Source: Andalucia godoyi And28
Lineage: Eukaryota; Protista; Jakobida
Reading direction: 5' to 3'
Assembly (NCBI GenBank): GCA_009859145.1
Contig: VRVR01000013.1
Location: forward strand, 24,786 to 88,785
Length of the DNA stretch: 64,000 bases
Positions 24,539-42,926 of the stretch are shown here, piece after piece. The notes beneath the pieces are model-generated. The model saw nothing but the letters and a program-made list of their open reading frames with translations. It did no database searches and was not told where the DNA came from. Position 1 is the first letter of the stretch, and every line of letters begins with the position of its first letter. The translations under genes and the position numbers were made by a program.

Positions 24539-25735
24539 ATGGCAGACGCGAAAGGCTCGAATTACAACTGGGACACGATTGAGTCCAACTATGACGAAGT
24601 GTTCACTTCGTTTGATGACATGAAGCTTCCTGAAGAGCTTCTCCGCGGAATCTACGGACATGGTTTTGAGAAGCCGTCTGCAATTCAGCAGCGTGCTATT
24701 GTTCCGTTCATCAAGGGTCGTGACGAGATTGCTCAGGCCCAGTCTGGAACGGGAAAGACTGCGACGTTTTCAATTGGTATTTTGGCACGTATTAACCCTG
24801 CCGTCAAGCAGACGCAGGCATTGTTGCTTGCCCCTACTCGTGAGCTTGCACTCCAGATTGCCTCTGTGTTCTCAGCACTTGGTGAACACATGGGAATCGA
24901 GGTCTATGCCTGCATTGGAGGAAACAACGTCCGTGCGGATATGAACAAGCTTGAGCAGGGTGTCCACGTGGTCATCGGAACCCCGGGACGTGTGTTTGAC
25001 ATGATCAACCGCCGTGCGCTCCGTGCAGATACCATCCGCATGTTTGTGCTCGATGAAGCAGATGAGATGCTTTCAAAGGGATTCAAGGAACAGATCTATG
25101 AGATTTTCAGATTTTTGCCAGAGGACGTCCAGGTTGGTCTGTTCTCTGCCACCATGCCCCCTGATGTTTTGGAAATCACACAAAAGTTCATGCGCGACTC
25201 TGTTCGCATCCTTGTTAAGAAGGAGGAGCTGACCCTTGAAGGAATCAAGCAGTTCTACATTGCAATCGACAAGGAGGAGTGGAAGGCGGAGGTTCTCATG
25301 GATCTGTACCAACTCATCAACATTGCTCAGTGCGTTATCTTCTGCAACTCCCGACGCAAGGTGGAGTACGTTACGGACAAGCTGAGAGCCAAGGACTTTG
25401 CGGTTGCGTCCATCCATGGTGAAATGCCCCAGCAGGAAAGAGAGTACATCATGAAGGAGTTCCGCTCTGGAGCTGCCCGTGTCCTCATCACCACCGATCT
25501 TCTTGCCCGAGGTATCGATGTCCAGCAGGTGTCCCTTGTTATCAACTACGATCTTCCCTCCAACAAGGAAAACTACATCCATCGTATCGGTCGTTCCGGT
25601 CGTTTCGGCAGAAAGGGTGTTTCCATCAACTTTGTTACCAAGGACGAGGCTGGAATGCTCCGTGAACTCGAGCAGTTCTACAATTGTACCATAGAGGAGA
25701 TGCCTGCAAACATTGCAGATCTTTTGGCTCCTTAA
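24539..25735 (+). CDS. EIF4A: Eukaryotic initiation factor 4A (DEAD-box helicase)
   Basis: [34 protein letters not shown] and [13 protein letters not shown]. Confidence 0.98.
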
Positions 25736-31703: not shown

Positions 31704-34700
31704 CTAACGGCGACCGGAATGTTGCCTGCCGGAAACAAGACCAGGGACGCCACGGCTGGAGGGCCGTCCCGAAGCCGTACTTGCACTTGCACTTGCGCTC
31801 CCGGACGCCGGTCTTCCGCTCATTCCCAGCGTGGGAAGTGGTTGGCTGCTTGACATGTGGGACGCGCTCGGACGTCGGACGGCACGAGAGCTAGAGACAG
31901 ATCTGCCCGACAAGGATCCCGAGGAAGGAACCTGCGGCTGTGGCTGTGGCTGCGGTTCTTGTGTTACGGAAGCAACAACATGAGGATCCGCGAGAATGGT
32001 ATCCGATGGAGGCTCCATGCCGCTCTCTTGCATGGACGCGCGCAAATCGTCAATTTCAATCAACGCACGACGCAAATCCTGCAACGATGCTTCATACCGA
32101 TCTCGATAGAGCTGAACTTGTTCGGGGGCGTCGAGATCCATTTCGGACCGAAGGACGTCAAGCTTCGACAAGGCTTGCATCTTAATACGCTGCTCGTCGG
32201 CTAGCCGCTTCAGCAGCTTTTTGATCTCTCGATCTTTCTGGTCCTCGATGATGTTCGTCTTGCGCTGTACCTTCTCTTCAACAGAAGCAAACTGGCGCAG
32301 AGCGACATCCTTCTTTTCAATTTCGATCAGCAGTTTGTCAACATCAATGTGTGACCATCTCTCATAACGTTTGACCTTTTCCTCGAGATCCGTTAGCACC
32401 TGAGCATTTCGCACCTTCCAATGCACCAGCTGCTGTTTGTTCTTCATTTGCATATTCAGGTCCTTGCGCAACTGCTCAAGCTCAACTTCTGCACTGTGCA
32501 ATGCACTCTGCGTCGCCACGAGTTGCTGACGAAGAATGGTCTCGCGCTCCTCAACTCGTTCACGATTCGCCCAGTACTCCCGTTGCATCTTCTCGCGTTC
32601 ATGGACTTCCTTGCGCACGACTCTTTCGAATCGAGATTTGATAGTGGCCTGACGAAGCAACGCAAAGAGCGACATCTTCATAATCGTCTTTTTCATTTCC
32701 ATGTTTTCTTCCTTCACGCGGGAAATTTCATCGTCGAAACGAGCAATCTTCAAGGCTTTCCTCTTCAATTCCAAGGGGGCGTTTTCAGACTCGACCATCT
32801 TGAGCATTGCCTCCTTCTTGACCTCCATCAAATTGTTCTGCATCTCTCTGTAGAGATACGTGCGATATTCATCAAACTTGCCTTTTGTCAGCGTGAGTTC
32901 GCGATCCAGAGACTCGATACGGTCCTGGAACTCCGCCTCGATCTTGGTGCGTAGCACAGCCTCCTGCTCGGCCATCGACTTTCGGAGGCGCTCGTTCTCT
33001 TTGGAGAGCTCGTCAAGTGCATACAAAAGCTCGTAGTTTCGGTCCGCTAGTTCAATTTGGACTCTACGCTTGAGTGCGCGACGATCCATCTCGTGGATCG
33101 ATTCCAGATAACGGAGACGGCTCTCGAGCTGAAAGATGGTGTATGTCAAGCGGTGCGCCGTTTCCTTCAAAACCACAGACCGCTGATCTACGGCCGAAGA
33201 TTTCCACTCCATGAGCTTCTGCGTAAGCTCATCAAGACACAAATTCAAATGATCCTCGGTCACTTCACACACCACAATCTCCTCGGGCTCACCGCGCCGT
33301 TTCACGCAACGAGACAGGAATCGCTGCAAGAAATCCTTCACAAGCAGTGCTTTCGAAGAAACATCTGCAGACGAGCCCATTCCAGGCGCAGTGAGAAAAG
33401 GTGCCGGCTGGGATGCTCCAAAGCTCGATGGAACGACGGACGGAACAGAAGAATTCAGCGTGGCGCCTGTATCTGGTTCTGAAAATAATCTTGCGTAGAT
33501 GACTTGGACACGAGACACGTCTTCTTGGATGAGAAGCGCGGAGGTCTTCTGATGAAGAAGCAAGATCTGAACGGAGCGAATCAGCGACTCGGTCAACTTT
33601 CGAGGAGCATTGAGAGCGATGCGGGCCACCAGCACTTGCGGGGACACCGGCTGCGGCTCCTCCAACGCATCAAGCGTTGGAACTGCCTGGACTTGCGAGA
33701 GCGCAGCATTCCGGTTCTTCTCCTTGTCATCGGTCAGTGAATCATTGGATGCCTTGAAGGTCTCGATGAACGGCTTGACATTCACGAGGATATCGTCCTT
33801 AATTGCGTCCGCCAAACCGTCGGAATCGTCAAGTTTCAAGCAGCGAGCAGATGCCACCTTTTGAACGTAGAAAGACCGAAGCTTTGCAAGCGTCAGCGAA
33901 GTTTCCAAAAAGTGAATTTGCATCGACACTGCGAGCTCAGATTGACTCGTGGAGTAGACCTTTTCCTCGGCAAGCAAGTCATCAAGCAACAGATCAATAG
34001 CAGTCTCTTCGCCCGAAATGTAATTTCTTTCCGCGTCACCCAGAACTAACGAAATGTACTTGCATTTTGCCAACGGCGAATCCACAAGAGCACCTACAAA
34101 GGGGCCATAGTGCAACGCATGATCCACTGCCTTTGCATGGAAGAACTGGTTCTGGTTCATTCGCATACTCTTGGAATTCTCCTCCACGATCTTCCAAACT
34201 GATCCTGGAAGGCCCGAAACATCGACGACGAACGGAAGAGAAGCCAGCAATTTTGACCGGGCGACAGACCGAGACTGGTCCGGAACAGAATCCGAAACAA
34301 TGCAGCTCGAACACCAAGGATCGATTGGTGACACAAGAATATTCTCAAACGATCGGAGGATGCGAAGCGAATCGGCGACATTTGCCTTGTCACCCACGAC
34401 AGCACGTTTGGAACTGACAATATCAGTTAGATTACGGAGCGAAACAATCAGCTTGCAGTACAACATGCGTCGCTTGCACATGATGTAGCGAAGCACAACG
34501 TCCGGATCTGTGGGATCCGAAACATGCTCCAGCTCATCCCGTAACTTTGAAAAATCATGCGCGATCTGATCCAAACCCGCATTCTGCACAACATCCTCCA
34601 CAAGGGAAACCGTGAGCTTCGATTTCATGTAGACAAGATAAGCAACATCGAGCAATGCTGAGAAAATGCGCATGCTCTTCGACAATAAAAGAGCTCGTTT

Positions 34701-37700
34701 GCTCTTGTTGTATTCCAGGGGATCATTCGTTTGGAGAAGGCGCAGCACATCGACACGCGAAGGGATCACAAACACTGAACTGATCGTTCCGTCCATCCTG
34801 ATGAACTCTCCGCTGGTAACGGCATCCGATGATCCCGAAGTTGCTAATCCAGATGATGCAGTCCCGTTTCCATTCGCACTGTTGTTGGCATTGTTGCTGC
34901 TGCCGTTGTTGTTGCTAGTGCTGGTGTTGGTCGTCGCGTTGTTGTTGCTGCTGCTGCTGCTGTTGTTGTTGTTGTTATTGCTTGCAGACGCAGCGCTTGC
35001 GCGGACACCTTTTCCGGAAGTTGCGGAAAACCCAAAAGGACCCATTTTCCCTTGCATTTCAACTTCCAACAACAAACGCAAGGATTCTACAATCCTGGAA
35101 AATTGCACGCGAGATCCAATAAGCCTAATTTCCTGCAACATGTCCTTGCAGAAAGTATGCACCAACTCAAATTTTAGCTCACGAATTCTCTTTTGAACTG
35201 CATCCGGGGACTTTGATTTGAAAATAGGTGCTGATCGCTCATTGTAATCTCTCAAAACTTGCGCTCTGTACGAATGCTTCAGATTGTTCACAGACACGAA
35301 CAACTCGGACACAATGGACAGCATGGCAGAAGACAATTGCGCCGCCGCAGCGGAGGCCGGACGAGACTCGCCGTTTCCAGCGAGGGAATTGGAACGATAC
35401 GATGATCGTTGATCCGGGGAGCTAGAATCATGCAGTTCTGTGACAAACACATTGGAAGCAAACAACGATGCTGGTTTAACAACGTCCAACAAAACCTGAT
35501 TGTGATGGACAGCGACAATGTAAAGATTTTTCTGCAATACCTGCGTCTGAACTGCTCGGCGCAGTTCGTACAACCCTGCGGGAGACAGCAGTTTCTTGAT
35601 ACCAGAAGAAGACACAAAGTCAAAGTGCGACAACGACGACTCGAACTCCGATATTGCAAGATTCGTCAGATAATCCGAACGCAATGCAAGAACCTCCGAC
35701 CCCTTGTTCTTGGTCACCTCTACCTTGTCTGCAGACGAAAATTGCAAAGGATCCAATTGCATGTTCTTCACATCTCTGCCGACAATCTTGCCTTGATCGC
35801 GGTACACTGTGAACAGGACATCACACTCGAAAAGATCATCAAGAAGCGCACGACGCAACCACATGAGTTCAACAGAGGATGCAAAAAGCTGCATCATCGT
35901 CGACTCCGTCGTATCGATCGGGAAACCGCCGGAAGACAGCAGCACATTGTTGGGAACTGGGGTTCCCGCATCCTTCTGACTCGTGGACAGGTCGCGGGTA
36001 ACTGCACTCTGTTTTAGTTCTGCATCTCTGAACTCGGTGACGTAGTCGCGAGCGATCATTTCGATGGCCTCGGGATCCTCAATCAGAATGCCTCGATCAT
36101 ACGAGGTGTTTGCAGGATCGTCGCCCTTCTTGGCAAACGACTTCGCAATTCTGTCCTCTTCCAACAAAAGTTTCCATTCCACAATCGAAAGCTGCAAGAA
36201 AATACGATGCAGAGCAGAAAAGTGAGACGGCTGACGAACTTGAAGATCGTCGATCAGCTCCTGCACACATCGAGCGATCGTTCCCATGATCTGCGTAACG
36301 GTGGATAGCGACGGATACACATCCAGCGCGCCAATGTAGCACCCACCTGGAATTAGAAATGCCTTCGGATGCGTGTTCGAAACAGGCTGGAGAGGGTATC
36401 CATCACTGAATTCTGGGTGTTCTTCCAAGAAACTGCCGATCTTCTTGTACACAAAATTGAGCCCGTCCCTTTCTTCTGCAACTTGATGAGTGATGAGAGA
36501 TCGAAGAAGCGATGCTTGCAGTTCGAACAGAACAATCTCCGAGGCATACGCCGAAGAGAAATACTCGAGTTCCAAATCATATCGAGGTCGACGATAAATC
36601 GTATTCATGATCATGGTATTCAGCTTCTGACGTTCGTGCGGATCCGTGCAGTGATCGTAAATTTCAAACAGACAGTCCACGACCTTCTTCTTGGCAGCTT
36701 GGAACCAGGCCTCGCTTTCAAACAAGTCTTCAAGAACCGAGCTTCGATCTACATCTGAAAATGGACGACCATTGCCATATTTGCCGGCTACAAGGTCGCT
36801 GGTAAACCCGCCACCACCATGCTGCTGTTGCATCAGGCGTGCAGCAATGTTGGCAGAAACGCGCGACGCGTTCTGCATCGAATTCTGGCTTCCAGACGAT
36901 CCTTCATAGGATCTGTCATGATTCGCGATGCAATGAGATCCAAGTCGAATCAACTCAGCGGAAATAGCTTCCAAATCATGGACAGCGGCATCGTACATGA
37001 TGTAAACACCTTTCGAATCACGAACTCTGAAATCAACGCTCACACTCTCGTCCAGTCCGCTGAACTTGTCCGAGGTCGCGCTCTTTTTGCCATCGGGAAC
37101 CGCAGAAGTGAATGGGTCTTCCACAGTGCGATCCATAGAGTCCAACACATCATTCAGCGACACATAGGAATCATCGCGATCCTCAATCGTCCCCATTTTC
37201 ATGATTGCAACGTCGTCTACTCGAGATAGTCGAGAGGGATCGCCAAATGTGTTGTCTTTCGAAAGCACCGAAGGAAGCTTTTCATAAAAGCTACCGTTCA
37301 GTGTTGGCGATGTCTCATACGATTCCTGCTCAAACGCGTAGCCAAATGAATCCGACGTCAAACGACGCTCGACAGATCGCAAATAGTTCAAAGAATCGAG
37401 AATCTTTCGCCGGAACTCTCGAGTCCTCAAAAAACGCAAGAAATACACGGAGAGGAGCTTGTGCTTCATCATGAGGCGTTCGCGTTCTTCGATGTCGACG
37501 TATGATCCTGCACGGCGTCCAGGTCCGCTGAACGCAGCCTGATCATCATCGTCGACTATGGATTGTGCTACATTTAGCGCATGGCCTTGCGACTGAGCGA
37601 CTCGCGACAAATGGACATCCACCTGATCCTTCAGACGCTTGCTTACTTGATGGATATCATTGGACTCCAAGAACGAACACTCAACGCGGAGCACGTGGTC

Positions 37701-38957
37701 CATCTTTGTTGATTTTTCTAGAACGATTCGTTGCCGCTCCAGCTGCTCATCCAAGAACCTGTCTCTTCGCACATATTGGGCCCAATCAGCGTGCTTCAAA
37801 AACACGCCGTTCTGTAAGTCGATGTTAAGCGGAACACTGTTTGGAACTCCGGAGCTATCACCGTCGGCACCGTCATGTTTGGGATCCGATGTGGCATTCA
37901 TTCTGCTCCCGCCTTTTGCAAACAATGCATGTGGATAATCCGAAAACGAGAGGGCACTCGTCTGCGCACCGAAAATGGAGTTGAACTTCTTGCTGATCAT
38001 ATAAAAATACTCTTGCCCTTCGTCGGTGAATTGTGCACGGATATCAAAGGACTCTGCAAGCTCCTGCAGCGGCACGTCCAGGTCTTCGAGAAACTTTGCA
38101 ATCATGGGAATCTTCAGTGCATTCGAGGAACGAGGCAACTTGCCGTCTTGTACAATGTTCTCAGATTTCTGAAACTGATCCACAATTTCACTCTTCTTTG
38201 CAAACCGCAGCCACTGCAGCTTTCTCAAGAACCGTCTGATCTTCTTGTTCACACGGCTCTCGTGAATTTGCGATCGCATATACACCCGATACGCATCTGC
38301 ATCGAACAGCACGTCCGCAGATCCCCGAGGTTCTGAAATTGGTCCTTTCAACGAACCACACTTTGCTTCGACATCTACAAGCCAAGACGCAGCGACATCG
38401 TACTGTCGCTCCAGATTCCTCAAGCGGTGGTCCAAGTCCGGAAACATAATCTCCACGTTGTTACTGGTCGATGAGAACCGCGCCCATCGTTTGAGCAAAA
38501 TGTACTTGTACATCGCCAACACCGAAAGTCGGTTTGCAAAAAACTCACGCAAAGCCGCATTCGCAAACACATAGCTGTTTCTTTCAATCTCCAGCGACAA
38601 GACTTCGCTGGACAAGAGCTCTCCATAGGAAAGCATAGGAGGGAGCGGATCAGGCTTCTCCGTAGCAGTGAGAATCTTCGATCGACTCTCGGAAAGATGC
38701 TCGAACGACGGGATCTTCGTCTTGTCGATGGAAGCAGCGACCGAGTTAAAGTGTGCATCTCCCGATGAATAAGACGATGTTCGTGCCTCAATCAATTGCT
38801 GAACACTCGATATTGCATTCTCAAGATCCAACAGCTTCATGCGCTCTTCGTGGGAGATGGAGATGTCTTCTGCGTGAGCAAACGCCTTGGATCCGGGATG
38901 TTTTTCCGCAAGTGCACGATTTGCAGACACCTCGGAAAAGGAGGATTTCTGTGCCAT
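31704..38957 (-). CDS. Giant CCDC162/DUF4549-like coiled-coil protein (2417 aa)
   Basis: N-terminal FFANRLSVLAMYKYILLKRWARFS...FP resembles DUF4549. Long C-terminal coiled coil; uninterrupted 7.25-kb ORF. Confidence 0.7.
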   Translation of the reverse strand: MAQKSSFSEVSANRALAEKHPGSKAFAHAEDISISHEERMKLLDLENAISSVQQLIEARTSSYSSGDAHFNSVAASIDKTKIPSFEHLSESRSKILTATEKPDPLPPMLSYGELLSSEVLSLEIERNSYVFANAALREFFANRLSVLAMYKYILLKRWARFSSTSNNVEIMFPDLDHRLRNLERQYDVAASWLVDVEAKCGSLKGPISEPRGSADVLFDADAYRVYMRSQIHESRVNKKIRRFLRKLQWLRFAKKSEIVDQFQKSENIVQDGKLPRSSNALKIPMIAKFLEDLDVPLQELAESFDIRAQFTDEGQEYFYMISKKFNSIFGAQTSALSFSDYPHALFAKGGSRMNATSDPKHDGADGDSSGVPNSVPLNIDLQNGVFLKHADWAQYVRRDRFLDEQLERQRIVLEKSTKMDHVLRVECSFLESNDIHQVSKRLKDQVDVHLSRVAQSQGHALNVAQSIVDDDDQAAFSGPGRRAGSYVDIEERERLMMKHKLLSVYFLRFLRTREFRRKILDSLNYLRSVERRLTSDSFGYAFEQESYETSPTLNGSFYEKLPSVLSKDNTFGDPSRLSRVDDVAIMKMGTIEDRDDSYVSLNDVLDSMDRTVEDPFTSAVPDGKKSATSDKFSGLDESVSVDFRVRDSKGVYIMYDAAVHDLEAISAELIRLGSHCIANHDRSYEGSSGSQNSMQNASRVSANIAARLMQQQHGGGGFTSDLVAGKYGNGRPFSDVDRSSVLEDLFESEAWFQAAKKKVVDCLFEIYDHCTDPHERQKLNTMIMNTIYRRPRYDLELEYFSSAYASEIVLFELQASLLRSLITHQVAEERDGLNFVYKKIGSFLEEHPEFSDGYPLQPVSNTHPKAFLIPGGCYIGALDVYPSLSTVTQIMGTIARCVQELIDDLQVRQPSHFSALHRIFLQLSIVEWKLLLEEDRIAKSFAKKGDDPANTSYDRGILIEDPEAIEMIARDYVTEFRDAELKQSAVTRDLSTSQKDAGTPVPNNVLLSSGGFPIDTTESTMMQLFASSVELMWLRRALLDDLFECDVLFTVYRDQGKIVGRDVKNMQLDPLQFSSADKVEVTKNKGSEVLALRSDYLTNLAISEFESSLSHFDFVSSSGIKKLLSPAGLYELRRAVQTQVLQKNLYIVAVHHNQVLLDVVKPASLFASNVFVTELHDSSSPDQRSSYRSNSLAGNGESRPASAAAAQLSSAMLSIVSELFVSVNNLKHSYRAQVLRDYNERSAPIFKSKSPDAVQKRIRELKFELVHTFCKDMLQEIRLIGSRVQFSRIVESLRLLLEVEMQGKMGPFGFSATSGKGVRASAASASNNNNNNSSSSSNNNATTNTSTSNNNGSSNNANNSANGNGTASSGLATSGSSDAVTSGEFIRMDGTISSVFVIPSRVDVLRLLQTNDPLEYNKSKRALLLSKSMRIFSALLDVAYLVYMKSKLTVSLVEDVVQNAGLDQIAHDFSKLRDELEHVSDPTDPDVVLRYIMCKRRMLYCKLIVSLRNLTDIVSSKRAVVGDKANVADSLRILRSFENILVSPIDPWCSSCIVSDSVPDQSRSVARSKLLASLPFVVDVSGLPGSVWKIVEENSKSMRMNQNQFFHAKAVDHALHYGPFVGALVDSPLAKCKYISLVLGDAERNYISGEETAIDLLLDDLLAEEKVYSTSQSELAVSMQIHFLETSLTLAKLRSFYVQKVASARCLKLDDSDGLADAIKDDILVNVKPFIETFKASNDSLTDDKEKNRNAALSQVQAVPTLDALEEPQPVSPQVLVARIALNAPRKLTESLIRSVQILLLHQKTSALLIQEDVSRVQVIYARLFSEPDTGATLNSSVPSVVPSSFGASQPAPFLTAPGMGSSADVSSKALLVKDFLQRFLSRCVKRRGEPEEIVVCEVTEDHLNLCLDELTQKLMEWKSSAVDQRSVVLKETAHRLTYTIFQLESRLRYLESIHEMDRRALKRRVQIELADRNYELLYALDELSKENERLRKSMAEQEAVLRTKIEAEFQDRIESLDRELTLTKGKFDEYRTYLYREMQNNLMEVKKEAMLKMVESENAPLELKRKALKIARFDDEISRVKEENMEMKKTIMKMSLFALLRQATIKSRFERVVRKEVHEREKMQREYWANRERVEERETILRQQLVATQSALHSAEVELEQLRKDLNMQMKNKQQLVHWKVRNAQVLTDLEEKVKRYERWSHIDVDKLLIEIEKKDVALRQFASVEEKVQRKTNIIEDQKDREIKKLLKRLADEQRIKMQALSKLDVLRSEMDLDAPEQVQLYRDRYEASLQDLRRALIEIDDLRASMQESGMEPPSDTILADPHVVASVTQEPQPQPQPQVPSSGSLSGRSVSSSRAVRRPSASHMSSSQPLPTLGMSGRPASGSASASASTASGRPSSRGVPGLVSGRQHSGRR

Positions 38958-39462
38958 GAGGTTCGTTCCGGTTCAGTTAAACGGCGATGATGATGATGAT
39001 GATGATGACTACAATCGAGATCGCGACGACAATGAAAAACAGAACAAAGAAGTGCGAGAAAAAGAAGAAGAAAAAATAGCAAAAAGGATTCCAGGAGAAA
39101 AAAAAATTGGAAACGAAGTGATGATCAGGAATTCGTTATCAAGTGAGAGTTGTGCTGGATGCATGTGTCGCTGGGTCTGTCTTGGTTGACTTGGTTGACA
39201 GTTTTTCTCGTAGTGATGTCCATGGGAAAACGGTTGCCAAACGACACATTAGACTTCCTCTTTTTAATTTTATTGCGTCTGTGAGTCTGCTCCTACAGAT
39301 ACACTACGACTGGTGAAGAGAGAGAGAGAGAGAGAGGTCCGGCAACTCGGTTCGGGGGAAAACGTCCCACTTCACGCTTTTGATTCTTTCGTTTTCTTTA
39401 GCGAAACGGCGCGCAAAGGCATCGGCAGTCGGTCGAACGGAGCGGCAGCACGAGGGGGAGTG

Positions 39463-39493
<31 letters not shown>

Positions 39494-39518
39494 TGCGTGT
39501 GTTTCCGTTCTGGTGTGC

Positions 39519-40025
39519 ATGTGGACACTGAGCAGATTTGCAGCTCGACATGCGTCCAGGAAGCCTCGGCCGGCGAATTTGCTTGTGGAGAATCACAGAG
39601 CTGGGAAAGATCACAGCATTTCTTCAACGGTGGAATGCGGGATTTCGCTCCAGACGTCCGAAGTGAAGTCGCTCAGTGCAAAGCATGCCGATTTGTCGTC
39701 AGGACATGTCCAGGTCATCGACAATGAGGCGTTTCTGATGGATGTCCATATTCCGCAAACGCGGTCATGCTTGCCCTTTCATTCTCATCTGTCAGATCGA
39801 CCGAGAAAGCTACTGATGCACAAGAAGCAGATCAAAGATGTGGAGGACTGGATCAAAGAGAAGGATCGAGACGTCATCCCGTTGCGGTTTAGACAGGGCG
39901 AGACGGGGTGGATGAAGGTGGATGTTGGATTTGGAGAGCGGAAAGGAACCGGGGATGAACGAGAGGCGGAACAAGGGAAAAAATGGAAGAAGGAGAGAAC
40001 AGATTTTCTAAAGGGCTGCTCCTAG
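39519..40025 (+). CDS. smpB: SsrA(tmRNA)-binding protein SmpB with a mitochondrial-type presequence
   Basis: VENHRAGKDH...ECGISLQTSEVKSL...FLMDVHIP...RPRKLLMHKKQI...VIPLRF...KVDVG match the bacterial SmpB motifs (NRKARHDY, EAGIxLxGxEVKSL, RxRKLLLHKxEI, PL). The N-terminus MWTLSRFAARHASRKPR is basic and acid-free. Confidence 0.85.
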   Translation: MWTLSRFAARHASRKPRPANLLVENHRAGKDHSISSTVECGISLQTSEVKSLSAKHADLSSGHVQVIDNEAFLMDVHIPQTRSCLPFHSHLSDRPRKLLMHKKQIKDVEDWIKEKDRDVIPLRFRQGETGWMKVDVGFGERKGTGDEREAEQGKKWKKERTDFLKGCS

Positions 40026-40150
40026 AACAAGGCACCGTGGTACTTGGCTTTACATGCTTTTCCTATTCCTACTGTGCACCTTCCTCCAGCAAGAAAATGG
40101 AGAAAAAAAAAGATGGTGATAGTGGTAGTGGTGATGATAATGGGTAGGCT

Positions 40151-42412
40151 TCATGTTGTTGACGATGGTAGTCGCAGAATAGCCGGTTCCTTGAGATCTG
40201 CGACATGCGGCGGCTGTATCATTCCGGGCACGAAGATCTCGGAATTCAACGTGTCGAGCCACGCCGGCTCCTTTTCCCACTCCACGACTGGTTGCGGAGA
40301 AACGGGGTCGGGCTGTTTCCAAAAGACAAAATTTCTCGGAAGCGGACTGCCTCCGATCAGCATCGACTGAAACGCACAGAGCACGTGGCAGCATGGTAGG
40401 CTCGTGTTTGACGGCAACTGACAAGAACAGGCAATGTCTCGCTCAGAAACGTCAATGTACGGAAGCGTTTGGCTGTCGGTAAAGCTTACCGGAATGTAGA
40501 CAGAATGTGCACGATCTCCAAAAGCCCCAAACATACCGGGGCGCGGCCTGACAGCAAAAGACAGTAAAATCGTGCGCTCGGACACACGCTTCTCTTCCAG
40601 CTTTTCCGCCACATAGTAGGTTCCTTCGATTTCCTCGATGGCAATTTTCGCCAAGGCATGCTGGGAAAGTCCTTGGTCAAGCACGCTGAGGACGGAATAC
40701 GGGGCCTCCCGCTGGCCGCTCGTTCGGAACAGAGAACTCCTGTTCCGAACGGTGATGGAGTGTGCGACTTCACTGTGGGTGGGGTTGCGGACTTGATCGT
40801 TGCGCAAGAGAACCCGGAACAAATGCGAAACTCGCGAAGCACGTGCGACCTGCGCTTTCTTTGCAATGCAGAATGCCTCCATAAGAGGATAAGAATCTGC
40901 TTCCGCAACAAACTGGTCCGCGTAGAAACAGGGAACCCAGCGATACATCATTTCCCGAAAGCTGCTCAGCATGTCCCGTAGTGAAGACACCATTTCCAAG
41001 GGTCTGTCTTGCACGCGAGAAATCAAATTCTGCCCGAACTCCATCCACATAGTCTCAAACTGCACTTGGTCCTCTGCATTCCGTCGCAGGCGGTCGAAAT
41101 CGCCCAAAATCAACTCAATATCCTTGGCATCAAACAAGGATTTCAAACGCTTTTGGAGTGCCCGCTTGACGTGGCACACATTTGTGCCGAGACGAACAGC
41201 AGGCCACGTTGAAGAGACGGCGTTTTGAAAGGAAAAGTCGCCGTCGGAAAACAGAACCTGCGGGGTGCCGCCGAGCAAAGAGACGAATGTCTGCAGCAAC
41301 CAGACATAGGATTCGACTGTCTCTTCGCTGAAGACAGCATATGCAACCGGAACAGTCTGGTTCTCCGCATTCACAGAGCAGATGAACACAAGCCGCATTC
41401 CTCGGAAGCTGATGTTGCAAGACGGCTCAATCAATATGATGTACCTTCCAAAGGCGCTGAATCTCAGACGCCCATTCGATGTCACCCACATTAATCTTTC
41501 GACTTCATTTGCAGAGGAAGCCGAGAACGAGAATCCAAATTGGTCGTCTCGTTTCTTTTCAAGCAAGCACATTCGGACCAGCACAGTCATCTTTCCGCTT
41601 TCTTCCACCAATCCAGCACCGAGCACGGATGACAGCGTTGCAGAGGAGGAGGAAGAAGAAGATGATGATGATGATGACGATGAGGAGGAAGAGGAGGCAC
41701 CGGAGGACAGCAATGTCGCCGCCACCACGGACGAACCAATGGCCGAGCCCACCGAAATCGGTCCAGAAGCAGACGGAACGGGACCTGGCGCACCAGAATC
41801 CTGATCATCGTCTTGAGCGGAAACTGGAAGACAAGTTGAAATATCTTGCCGAACCATACCCGCTGACGACCGCTCCTCGTTCAAAGCAGGAACCACGGGG
41901 ACCGACGGTGCAAGATCCATGGATTGCATCGACACGGACTCGGCGTGCACGGAAACAGGAGTCGGAGTGGGAATGGGAGTGAGAGAGTGTGTGGAGCTCG
42001 CGGATCGCCGCTGCTGTTTGCGCCTTCTCTGTGCCAAGGCATCTGCATCTGCACCACTTGCCTCTGGATCCGGGGTATGTCCAACGTGCTCCAGATGGCT
42101 ACTCTTCAAGAGGAACTGACCCGTTGCAGGATTTCCCACGAAATACACAAACCACTTGCATCCACACCGAGCTGTTTCACGGTGTCTTTTCCGCAGCTCT
42201 TCTGGAATGTCCCGCGTGTGGCCGCTTGCAGAACACACGAACCGGATGGACTGCACCTCCCGCCCATCGCTTGTTTTCCAGTCAAATCCGGAAGTCCGTT
42301 CACGACATATGCACTGTCCACATCGAACTCCAAACCCGTTTCGGTGCGCAAACGAAAGAACTGTCTCTACCAAACTTCGGTAGTTTGGAAACACGGTCGG
42401 AATCGTTTCCAT
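40151..42412 (-). CDS. FAR1/FHY3-like MULE-transposase-derived protein (FAR1-type Zn DNA-binding domain, MULE domain, SWIM)
   Basis: GFGVR...FVCSASG...ARCGCKW...HxxH; VPVAYAVFSEETVESYVWLLQTF...LFSDGD; SWIM CSCQLPSNTSLPCCHVL. Confidence 0.85.
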   Translation of the reverse strand: METIPTVFPNYRSLVETVLSFAHRNGFGVRCGQCICRERTSGFDWKTSDGREVQSIRFVCSASGHTRDIPEELRKRHRETARCGCKWFVYFVGNPATGQFLLKSSHLEHVGHTPDPEASGADADALAQRRRKQQRRSASSTHSLTPIPTPTPVSVHAESVSMQSMDLAPSVPVVPALNEERSSAGMVRQDISTCLPVSAQDDDQDSGAPGPVPSASGPISVGSAIGSSVVAATLLSSGASSSSSSSSSSSSSSSSSSATLSSVLGAGLVEESGKMTVLVRMCLLEKKRDDQFGFSFSASSANEVERLMWVTSNGRLRFSAFGRYIILIEPSCNISFRGMRLVFICSVNAENQTVPVAYAVFSEETVESYVWLLQTFVSLLGGTPQVLFSDGDFSFQNAVSSTWPAVRLGTNVCHVKRALQKRLKSLFDAKDIELILGDFDRLRRNAEDQVQFETMWMEFGQNLISRVQDRPLEMVSSLRDMLSSFREMMYRWVPCFYADQFVAEADSYPLMEAFCIAKKAQVARASRVSHLFRVLLRNDQVRNPTHSEVAHSITVRNRSSLFRTSGQREAPYSVLSVLDQGLSQHALAKIAIEEIEGTYYVAEKLEEKRVSERTILLSFAVRPRPGMFGAFGDRAHSVYIPVSFTDSQTLPYIDVSERDIACSCQLPSNTSLPCCHVLCAFQSMLIGGSPLPRNFVFWKQPDPVSPQPVVEWEKEPAWLDTLNSEIFVPGMIQPPHVADLKEPAILRLPSSTT

Positions 42413-42415
<3 letters not shown>

Positions 42416-42455
<40 letters not shown>
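42416..42455. repeat. (GA)n microsatellite directly upstream of the FAR1-like ATG
   Basis: Direct reading. Confidence 0.9.
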
Positions 42456-42461
<6 letters not shown>

Positions 42462-42926
42462 GAAAGAAGAACGAGAACGAGAACGAGAAAAAGAAGAGAT
42501 TGCTGGTGTTAATGATTGTACAGCTCAAAGGAAGCAAGATAAGACTGAAAGACAAAAAATTAAAATTGGACATTGCACGTTAAGGAAACACGAAATGGAA
42601 ACCAAGGAGTAAGCGAGTTGTCGATCGCGTCGTAATTGGTGATCGGTGAGAGTCGGAGTTAAGCGAAATGGCGGGAACGATCGAAATCGAGGAAATTCCA
42701 AACAGACACTTGAGGCACTCAAAGCCTCCAGTCGAAACTTCAAAATTGAAAACCCTTTTCTTTCTTCTCCATTTGCTTCCGATTGCTTGTCGATTGCTTG
42801 TCGATTGTTCTTTGTTATTATTTTATTGAGTTGGATTCAGGTGGAAAGAAGAAGAAGGAAGAGGCCTTGCGCAAACGGTTTTGTAGAAGAAGGACTGGCA
42901 GGTTCTGAATCAGCTATAGAAATAAT

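Follow-up and report, generated by a model that had tools for sequence, protein, structure and literature searches.

A nuclear gene for a predicted mitochondrial SmpB in the jakobid Andalucia godoyi implies organellar ribosome rescue by tmRNA

Results

Genomic setting of the SmpB gene

The window analysed here, 64,000 nucleotides of DNA from the jakobid Andalucia godoyi, belongs to a contig of 396.5 kb, has a GC content of about 50% and carries mostly intronless genes. Embedded among eukaryotic genes of this window lies an open reading frame (ORF) for the tmRNA-binding protein SmpB (Table 1), which starts with an ATG at 39519, continues through 168 codons in a single uninterrupted frame and ends with a TAG at 40025. 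An earlier note on this DNA, made from the letters alone, had described an intronless 168-aa ORF at 39519-40025 flanked by eukaryotic genes. The coordinates are exact, the frame is intact, and the eukaryotic genes of the window include those for eIF4A, PAC2, NAA35/Mak10, ELMO/CED-12, DWNN, HOOK and RRM proteins. The GC3 of the SmpB gene is 0.583, compared with 0.56-0.59 in five other window genes. Eukaryotic neighbours, a GC3 like theirs and the length of the contig together place the gene in the nucleus, and the chimeric contig that the note had named as grounds for rejection is contradicted by the agreement in GC3.

The divergent upstream neighbour of SmpB is a 2417-aa ORF (31704-38957) in which no Pfam domain scored above threshold. 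The spacer between the two genes contains several simple repeats; one of them, (GT)22, stops 16 nt short of the SmpB ATG and shares its reading frame, so that mechanical ORF finding yields a spurious 187-aa 'GTG-start' ORF. On the other side, 125 bp separate the SmpB stop codon from that of a convergent, intact transposase-like ORF, which is context and stands outside the SmpB system. This ORF is flanked by a weak, purine-rich and low-complexity inverted repeat of 27 nt (40091-40117 and 42752-42778, 81% complementary) that may have arisen by chance or represent degenerate terminal repeats. Further away, the eIF4A gene encodes a protein with at most about 72% identity to its counterparts in named eukaryotes (~70-72%, in scattered taxa), a level that suggests a deep-branching protist. 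We also noticed, in a Logan read-set assembly, an eIF4A protein (P0027) of 96% identity and, in a JGI sample, another of 77%, which indicates that close relatives or other A. godoyi strains are present in public read sets.

The gene and its mitochondrial reading are already in print (PMC7050145; Gray et al. 2020, BMC Biol 18:22), and it is no new occurrence. Table S1 of that study lists ANDGO_03389.mRNA.1 as 'tmRNA-binding protein SmpB' of 168 aa with 0 introns; the protein encoded in the window is identical to it in 168 of 168 residues, and all 191 nt of the CDS prefix printed in the table are identical to the window CDS. The two are the same gene, with the same start codon, the same lack of introns and no difference between them. 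The same study describes the A. godoyi nuclear genome as ~20 Mb in size and intron-poor, with gene models checked against RNA-seq (PMC7050145).

Table 1. Features at and around the SmpB locus (positions in the window; residues are those of the 168-aa protein)
Feature	Position	Strand	Basis or remark
eIF4A gene, intronless	24539..25735	+	
ORF of 2417 aa, intronless, divergent upstream neighbour	31704-38957	-	coiled-coil, N/S runs; 561 bp from SmpB
Divergent intergenic region, 561 bp, between SmpB and the 2417-aa gene	38958..39518	.	holds (GAT)7, (AG)10 and (GT)22
Microsatellite (AG)10, perfect or near-perfect	39317-39336		intergenic spacer
Microsatellite (GT)22, perfect or near-perfect	39460-39502		intergenic spacer
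Mitochondrial SmpB CDS, complete, intronless	39519..40025	+	ORF, Pfam SmpB, match to Table S1
Presequence, residues 1-19, predicted mitochondrial targeting signal	39519..39575	+	composition, low pLDDT, published P
SmpB core beta-barrel, residues 20-141	39576..39941	+	strands and helices from E20-24 to E132-141 in the model
C-terminal tail, residues 142-168	39942..40022	+	helix 147-167 predicted; aligns with the T. maritima SmpB tail
FAR1/MULE/SWIM-type transposase-like ORF, intact, 753 aa, convergent neighbour	40151..42412	-	Pfam MULE 42 bits; FAR1 and SWIM weak
Microsatellite (AG)20, perfect or near-perfect	42416-42455		intergenic spacer

Family membership and predicted fold

The search with the SmpB profile that the earlier note had proposed gave a clear result: Pfam PF01668 matches the ORF with 103.2 bits (E 1.5e-29; gathering score 27) over profile positions 2-139 of 143. 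Sequence matches of the 168-aa protein in the PDB are SmpB chains only, the best being 7ljp (1.4e-16). Both NCBIfam SmpB equivalogs were missed, NF003843 with 111.2 against a cut-off of 130 and TIGR00086 with 95.8 against 119.1. These cut-offs are tuned on bacterial SmpB and serve the naming of bacterial proteins, and scores below both mark the A. godoyi protein as a divergent (organellar) member of the family.

We obtained an AlphaFold model from an alignment of 29 sequences, with a mean pLDDT of 90.7. It finds 21 significant fold matches in the PDB, all 21 of them SmpB, with target-normalised TM-scores of up to 0.91 and an rmsd of 1.2-1.6 Å over ~120 residues. In the model the core takes the form of an oligonucleotide-binding-like beta-barrel with flanking helices and superposes, within that same range of rmsd, on the cores of the T. 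maritima, A. aeolicus and T. thermophilus SmpBs. SmpB binds the tRNA-like domain of tmRNA with this beta-barrel. From the model and the alignment, residues 142-168 provide a basic, helix-capable C-terminal tail of the expected ~25-30 residues. In bacterial SmpB, the tail occupies the empty mRNA channel. The tail motif 'DKR' is not intact in A. godoyi, where it reads D146-E147-R148.

Bacterial SmpBs (E. coli b2620, T. thermophilus, T. maritima 7ljp) have the same fold and the same order of parts, with the C-terminal tail helix after the beta-barrel core, and A. godoyi SmpB keeps from them E48, K50, R94, R96, K133, D146 and R148. It differs from them in an overall identity of 27-39%, in ~12 extra presequence residues and in the replacement of three near-universal residues. 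As judged from its sequence and predicted fold, the 168-aa ORF is a bona fide SmpB.

A predicted mitochondrial presequence

The protein begins with MWTLSRFAARHASRKPRPA (residues 1-19), which has the features of a mitochondrial targeting signal. We examined this presequence by composition and hydrophobic moment. No Asp or Glu occurs in residues 1-23, residues 1-20 hold five Lys or Arg, and in the AlphaFold model residues 1-19 are of low confidence and without secondary structure. In the alignment, the N-terminal surplus over bacterial SmpBs amounts to ~12 residues and not to ~20, because bacterial SmpBs themselves carry ~8-10 residues before N-[RK]-[RK]-A; of the '~20-aa basic, acid-free extension' of the earlier note, the composition stands and the length does not. 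For ANDGO_03389.mRNA.1, Table S1 of PMC7050145 gives a targeting metric P of 73, where P averages MitoProt, TargetP, Predotar and PSORT II, scaled by 100, and values of 50-74 are classed as 'medium'. The presequence is kept in the closest relative that we found, where it reads MAWLASLRRFASRTKRPS. From the predictors ('medium', 73) and this conservation, the protein is predicted to be targeted to the mitochondrion.

Relatives in sequence collections

When the ORF was used in a word-index protein search, only the query itself and bacterial SmpBs of at most 39% identity came back and all eukaryotic relatives were missed, so that an exhaustive phmmer search and a profile search were needed. The former covered 1.84 billion representatives and gave 2340 matches at E <= 0.001. 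Its closest match is P0146, a protein from JGI metagenome 3300042934 encoded on contig L082. The public call is 130 aa long and starts at an internal Met; the real ORF (L082:1346-1846, + strand) has 166 aa, begins MAWLASLRRFASRTKRPSQYLIENH and shares 54% identity with A. godoyi SmpB over the whole length, presequence included. A comparison of the two genes gives a dN of 0.47 with saturation at synonymous sites, for which reason we state selection qualitatively only and give no dN/dS value. The full-length conservation speaks for the annotated start codon and for selection on the presequence, and it indicates that the protein is under purifying selection. An uncultured jakobid similar to Andalucia is the probable source of the L082 ORF.

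Among the high-scoring phmmer matches is the SmpB of the oomycete Aphanomyces invadans, and profile searching added further oomycete SmpBs. The oomycete mitochondrial proteins (Aphanomyces, Saprolegnia, Achlya, Lagenidium) resemble that of A. godoyi in combining a nuclear gene with a presequence; they differ from it in having longer presequences, and identity to it is 29-35%. Nucleus-encoded mitochondrial SmpBs of Phytophthora and Albugo have reportedly been published too, by Hafez and colleagues in 2013 and by Hudson and colleagues in 2014. A separate observation concerns a very divergent 211-aa SmpB, P0200 (L083:1823-2458, + strand), in the Logan assembly of run SRR15116022. It has an MTS-like leader of ~45 residues, and a Vps55 gene adjoins it on the contig, which identifies it as the nuclear SmpB of a eukaryote.

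Plastid-type algal SmpBs with long leaders were also among the matches. These plastid-targeted proteins of algae with red-type plastids (Pinguiococcus, diatoms) are, like A. godoyi SmpB, nucleus-encoded and paired with an organelle-encoded tmRNA. They carry bipartite leaders of 40-90 residues and keep both G46 and the K of 'DKR', whereas A. godoyi has neither residue. Jakobids are not known to have a plastid. An assignment of A. godoyi SmpB to the plastid type was rejected on three counts: its leader is short (~12-19 residues), it falls outside the plastid-type clade of our tree (94/81), and G46 and K147 are missing.

Since simple similarity ranks bacterial SmpBs (35-39% identity) first among named sequences, we considered whether the locus might be a bacterial contaminant, a very recent horizontal transfer without an organellar role or a chimeric stretch of the contig. 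This we regard as next to impossible. The gene sits on a 396.5-kb contig with eukaryotic genes around it, its neighbours lie only 125 bp and 561 bp away, and both its GC and its GC3 match theirs. No bacterium rises above ~40% identity, and a second eukaryote-like relative stands at 54%. Bacterial SmpBs are without the presequence present here, and RNA-seq served as a check on the published gene models (PMC7050145). Eukaryotic neighbours, matching GC3 and the presequence effectively refute all three forms of this explanation, which leaves the gene as one native to the nucleus.

Three residues that set mitochondrial-type SmpBs apart

We aligned to one profile 366 bacterial-type, 8 plastid-type and 10 mitochondrial-type SmpBs, the last comprising those of Andalucia, its L082 relative, seven oomycetes and P0200 (the eukaryote of run SRR15116022). 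The bacterial sample is biased toward query-like sequences, and the bacterial counts that follow are to be read with this bias. At the middle position of 'DKR' in the tail, E147 in A. godoyi, a basic residue is found in 349 of the 366 bacterial-type proteins (K in 336, R in 13) and in all 8 plastid-type ones (K 8/8), compared with 0/10 of the mitochondrial type, which have E, S, T, D or N instead. The G of 'G[TS]E[VI]KS' (T46 here) is present in 361/366 bacterial-type and 8/8 plastid-type sequences and is replaced by T, A or P in the mitochondrial type (n=10). At the first basic residue of 'N[RK][RK]A' (H26 here), R or K occurs in 357/366 and 8/8, respectively, and H or Q in the eight mitochondrial-type sequences that align at this position. 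The losses of G, K and the first basic residue are thus shared between the oomycete proteins and that of A. godoyi. Beside the three replacements, D146, R148 and the remaining core stay conserved. The earlier note had credited the protein with all core SmpB motifs; this was an overstatement, in that the core is otherwise conserved but H26, T46 and E147 stand at near-universal positions.

Published work on E. coli ties the K of 'DKR' to engagement of the tag frame. With this residue missing, the tail of A. godoyi SmpB may act differently. In the literature that we covered, with Jacob 2004 and Hafez 2013 lying beyond that coverage, we did not find the three-residue signature stated.

Substitution at three near-invariant positions, together with scores below the NCBIfam equivalog thresholds, might also be read as relaxed selection on a decaying relic or on a protein recruited to a tmRNA-free function, and the partner tmRNA is itself reduced and without a tag frame (PMC3590771, PMC11915505). 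We consider this reading very improbable. The ORF is intact, and a confident SmpB fold that includes the tail helix is predicted for its product. The same positions are changed in 10/10 mitochondrial-type SmpBs against a background of conservation at D146, R148 and in the remaining core, a combination that indicates lineage-specific constraint rather than decay. Despite saturated synonymous sites, the relative at 54% identity is still full length. Moreover, SmpB and mitochondrial tmRNA co-occur in several eukaryote lineages (PMC7050145). A pseudogene in particular was rejected on the intact ORF, the conserved core and the purifying selection indicated by the L082 comparison.

Phylogeny

A tree of 79 SmpB rows was calculated under LG+C20, with Gammaproteobacteria represented by E. 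coli only and Cyanobacteria by no sequence. A. godoyi SmpB pairs with its L082 metagenomic relative (99/87), and this pair, P0200 and the oomycetes lie on one side of a branch with 98/98 support. The plastid-type SmpBs form a clade of their own (94/81) within a non-alphaproteobacterial group that includes E. coli and a betaproteobacterium. A. godoyi SmpB therefore groups with the oomycete mitochondrial SmpBs and apart from the plastid type. The branch of P0200 is extremely long (5.4), and long-branch attraction may contribute to the grouping of Andalucia with the oomycetes.

In the full tree, the mitochondrial clade attaches in an alphaproteobacterial polytomy. Without the oomycetes, the Andalucia pair moves to the long branch of Leptospira instead, and in an AU test the mitochondrial clade can be united with the non-alphaproteobacterial clade at no cost in likelihood (p = 0.49). 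From the leave-out trees and this test it follows that the alphaproteobacterial attachment is not robust, and we do not claim independent support for it. The phylogeny that the earlier note had asked for thus delivers the placement with oomycete mitochondrial SmpBs (98/98), but its alphaproteobacterial part, an attachment to a polytomy, shifts without the oomycetes and is met by an AU p of 0.49.

The searches give a similarly mixed picture. By nearest labelled sequence, the best 148 exhaustive matches spread over mixed phyla with a modest alphaproteobacterial plurality. A scan of bacterial genomes with patterns from a four-sequence alignment placed 63 of the 80 best-scoring genome loci in Alphaproteobacteria, a share that is inflated because the patterns exclude N-termini of the gammaproteobacterial type.

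These results bear on whether the protein, mitochondrial as it is, descends vertically from the alphaproteobacterial ancestor of the organelle or whether it, or the ancestor shared by the mitochondrial-type SmpBs, was acquired from another group of bacteria. In an earlier analysis, oomycete mitochondrial SmpBs fell apart from Alphaproteobacteria (Hudson et al. 2014). The free union with the non-alphaproteobacterial clade in the AU test, the move of the Andalucia pair to the long Leptospira branch and the mix of phyla among the best unbiased phmmer matches all agree with such an acquisition. By contrast, Gray et al. retrieved an 'alphaproteobacteria-affiliated' SmpB as the partner of the mtDNA-encoded tmRNA, with a tree shown without support values (PMC7050145), and our full tree puts the mitochondrial clade in the alphaproteobacterial polytomy and not inside the non-alphaproteobacterial clade. 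The 63/80 loci also point to Alphaproteobacteria, even if the search pattern may favour them, and the partner tmRNA comes in two pieces as in alphaproteobacteria (PMC3590771). On balance we regard an acquisition from another bacterial group as unlikely.

Discussion

From its setting, sequence and relatives, we are confident that A. godoyi encodes its mitochondrial SmpB in this ORF, a gene native to the nucleus (ANDGO_03389). Table S3B of PMC7050145 pairs this SmpB with the ssrA gene of the A. godoyi mtDNA, NC_021124.1. Scans of the window with Rfam (at gathering thresholds) and with ARAGORN gave no tmRNA, no tRNA and no further RNA family, a result to be expected of nuclear DNA when ssrA resides in the mtDNA. 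The Andalucia mitochondrial tmRNA is compact and two-piece and has no mRNA-like domain (PMC3590771). It keeps the identity elements of tRNA-Ala, a G-U pair at acceptor position 3 and an A discriminator. Mitochondrial tmRNAs are generally without a tag reading frame (PMC11915505); that of oomycetes is mtDNA-encoded, permuted and devoid of one, and the A. godoyi partner likewise has none. Unlike its bacterial counterparts, the A. godoyi tmRNA has no mRNA-like domain, so that tagging is not expected.

A nucleus-encoded SmpB with predicted mitochondrial targeting supports the presence of bacterial-type ribosome rescue by tmRNA in the organelle. In the mechanism that we propose, the SmpB precursor would be imported into mitochondria by means of its presequence, and the mature protein would bind the tRNA-like domain of alanyl-tmRNA. 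Mitochondrial EF-Tu would deliver this complex to a mitoribosome that has stalled at the 3' end of a truncated mRNA and whose A site is empty; there the C-terminal tail helix of SmpB would probe the vacant mRNA channel and the nascent chain would be passed to the alanine of tmRNA. Since the tmRNA has neither a tag reading frame nor a stop codon, no degradation tag would be added and another factor would have to release the chain. For the steps past alanine transfer, we infer that release would be completed by such a factor, for example one of the ArfB/ICT1 type; ICT1/ArfB-type factors have been noted in A. godoyi (PMC7050145). With no tag added, the system would free ribosomes rather than tag proteins.

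The central proposal of the earlier note, that this organism keeps bacterial-type tmRNA rescue in its mitochondrion, is borne out by publication of the same gene together with the mtDNA ssrA NC_021124.1 (PMC7050145). The note had also listed mitochondrial tmRNA from few lineages, notably jakobids and oomycetes. The host is indeed a jakobid, so the new occurrence that was foreseen for a host outside those two groups does not arise; the list itself was too short, as Table S3B of PMC7050145 records the SmpB/tmRNA pair in oomycetes and also in Palpitomonas, Ancoracysta and Vannella/Paravannella.

The mitochondrial tmRNA-SmpB pair is a bacterial relic kept by few eukaryote lineages. Because this point has been made by Gray et al. 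(2020), the locus adds no new lineage and raises no new question, and its value lies in correct annotation. The three-residue signature could go further, as a tentative idea that we hold to be possible though rather doubtful: it could reflect co-adaptation of SmpB to tmRNAs without a tag reading frame, marking both 'alanine-only' rescue and a single ancient origin. If that were true, the SmpB tail would no longer need to set the resume codon in 'alanine-only' rescue, and the signature would favour the view that mitochondrial SmpB arose once, long ago.
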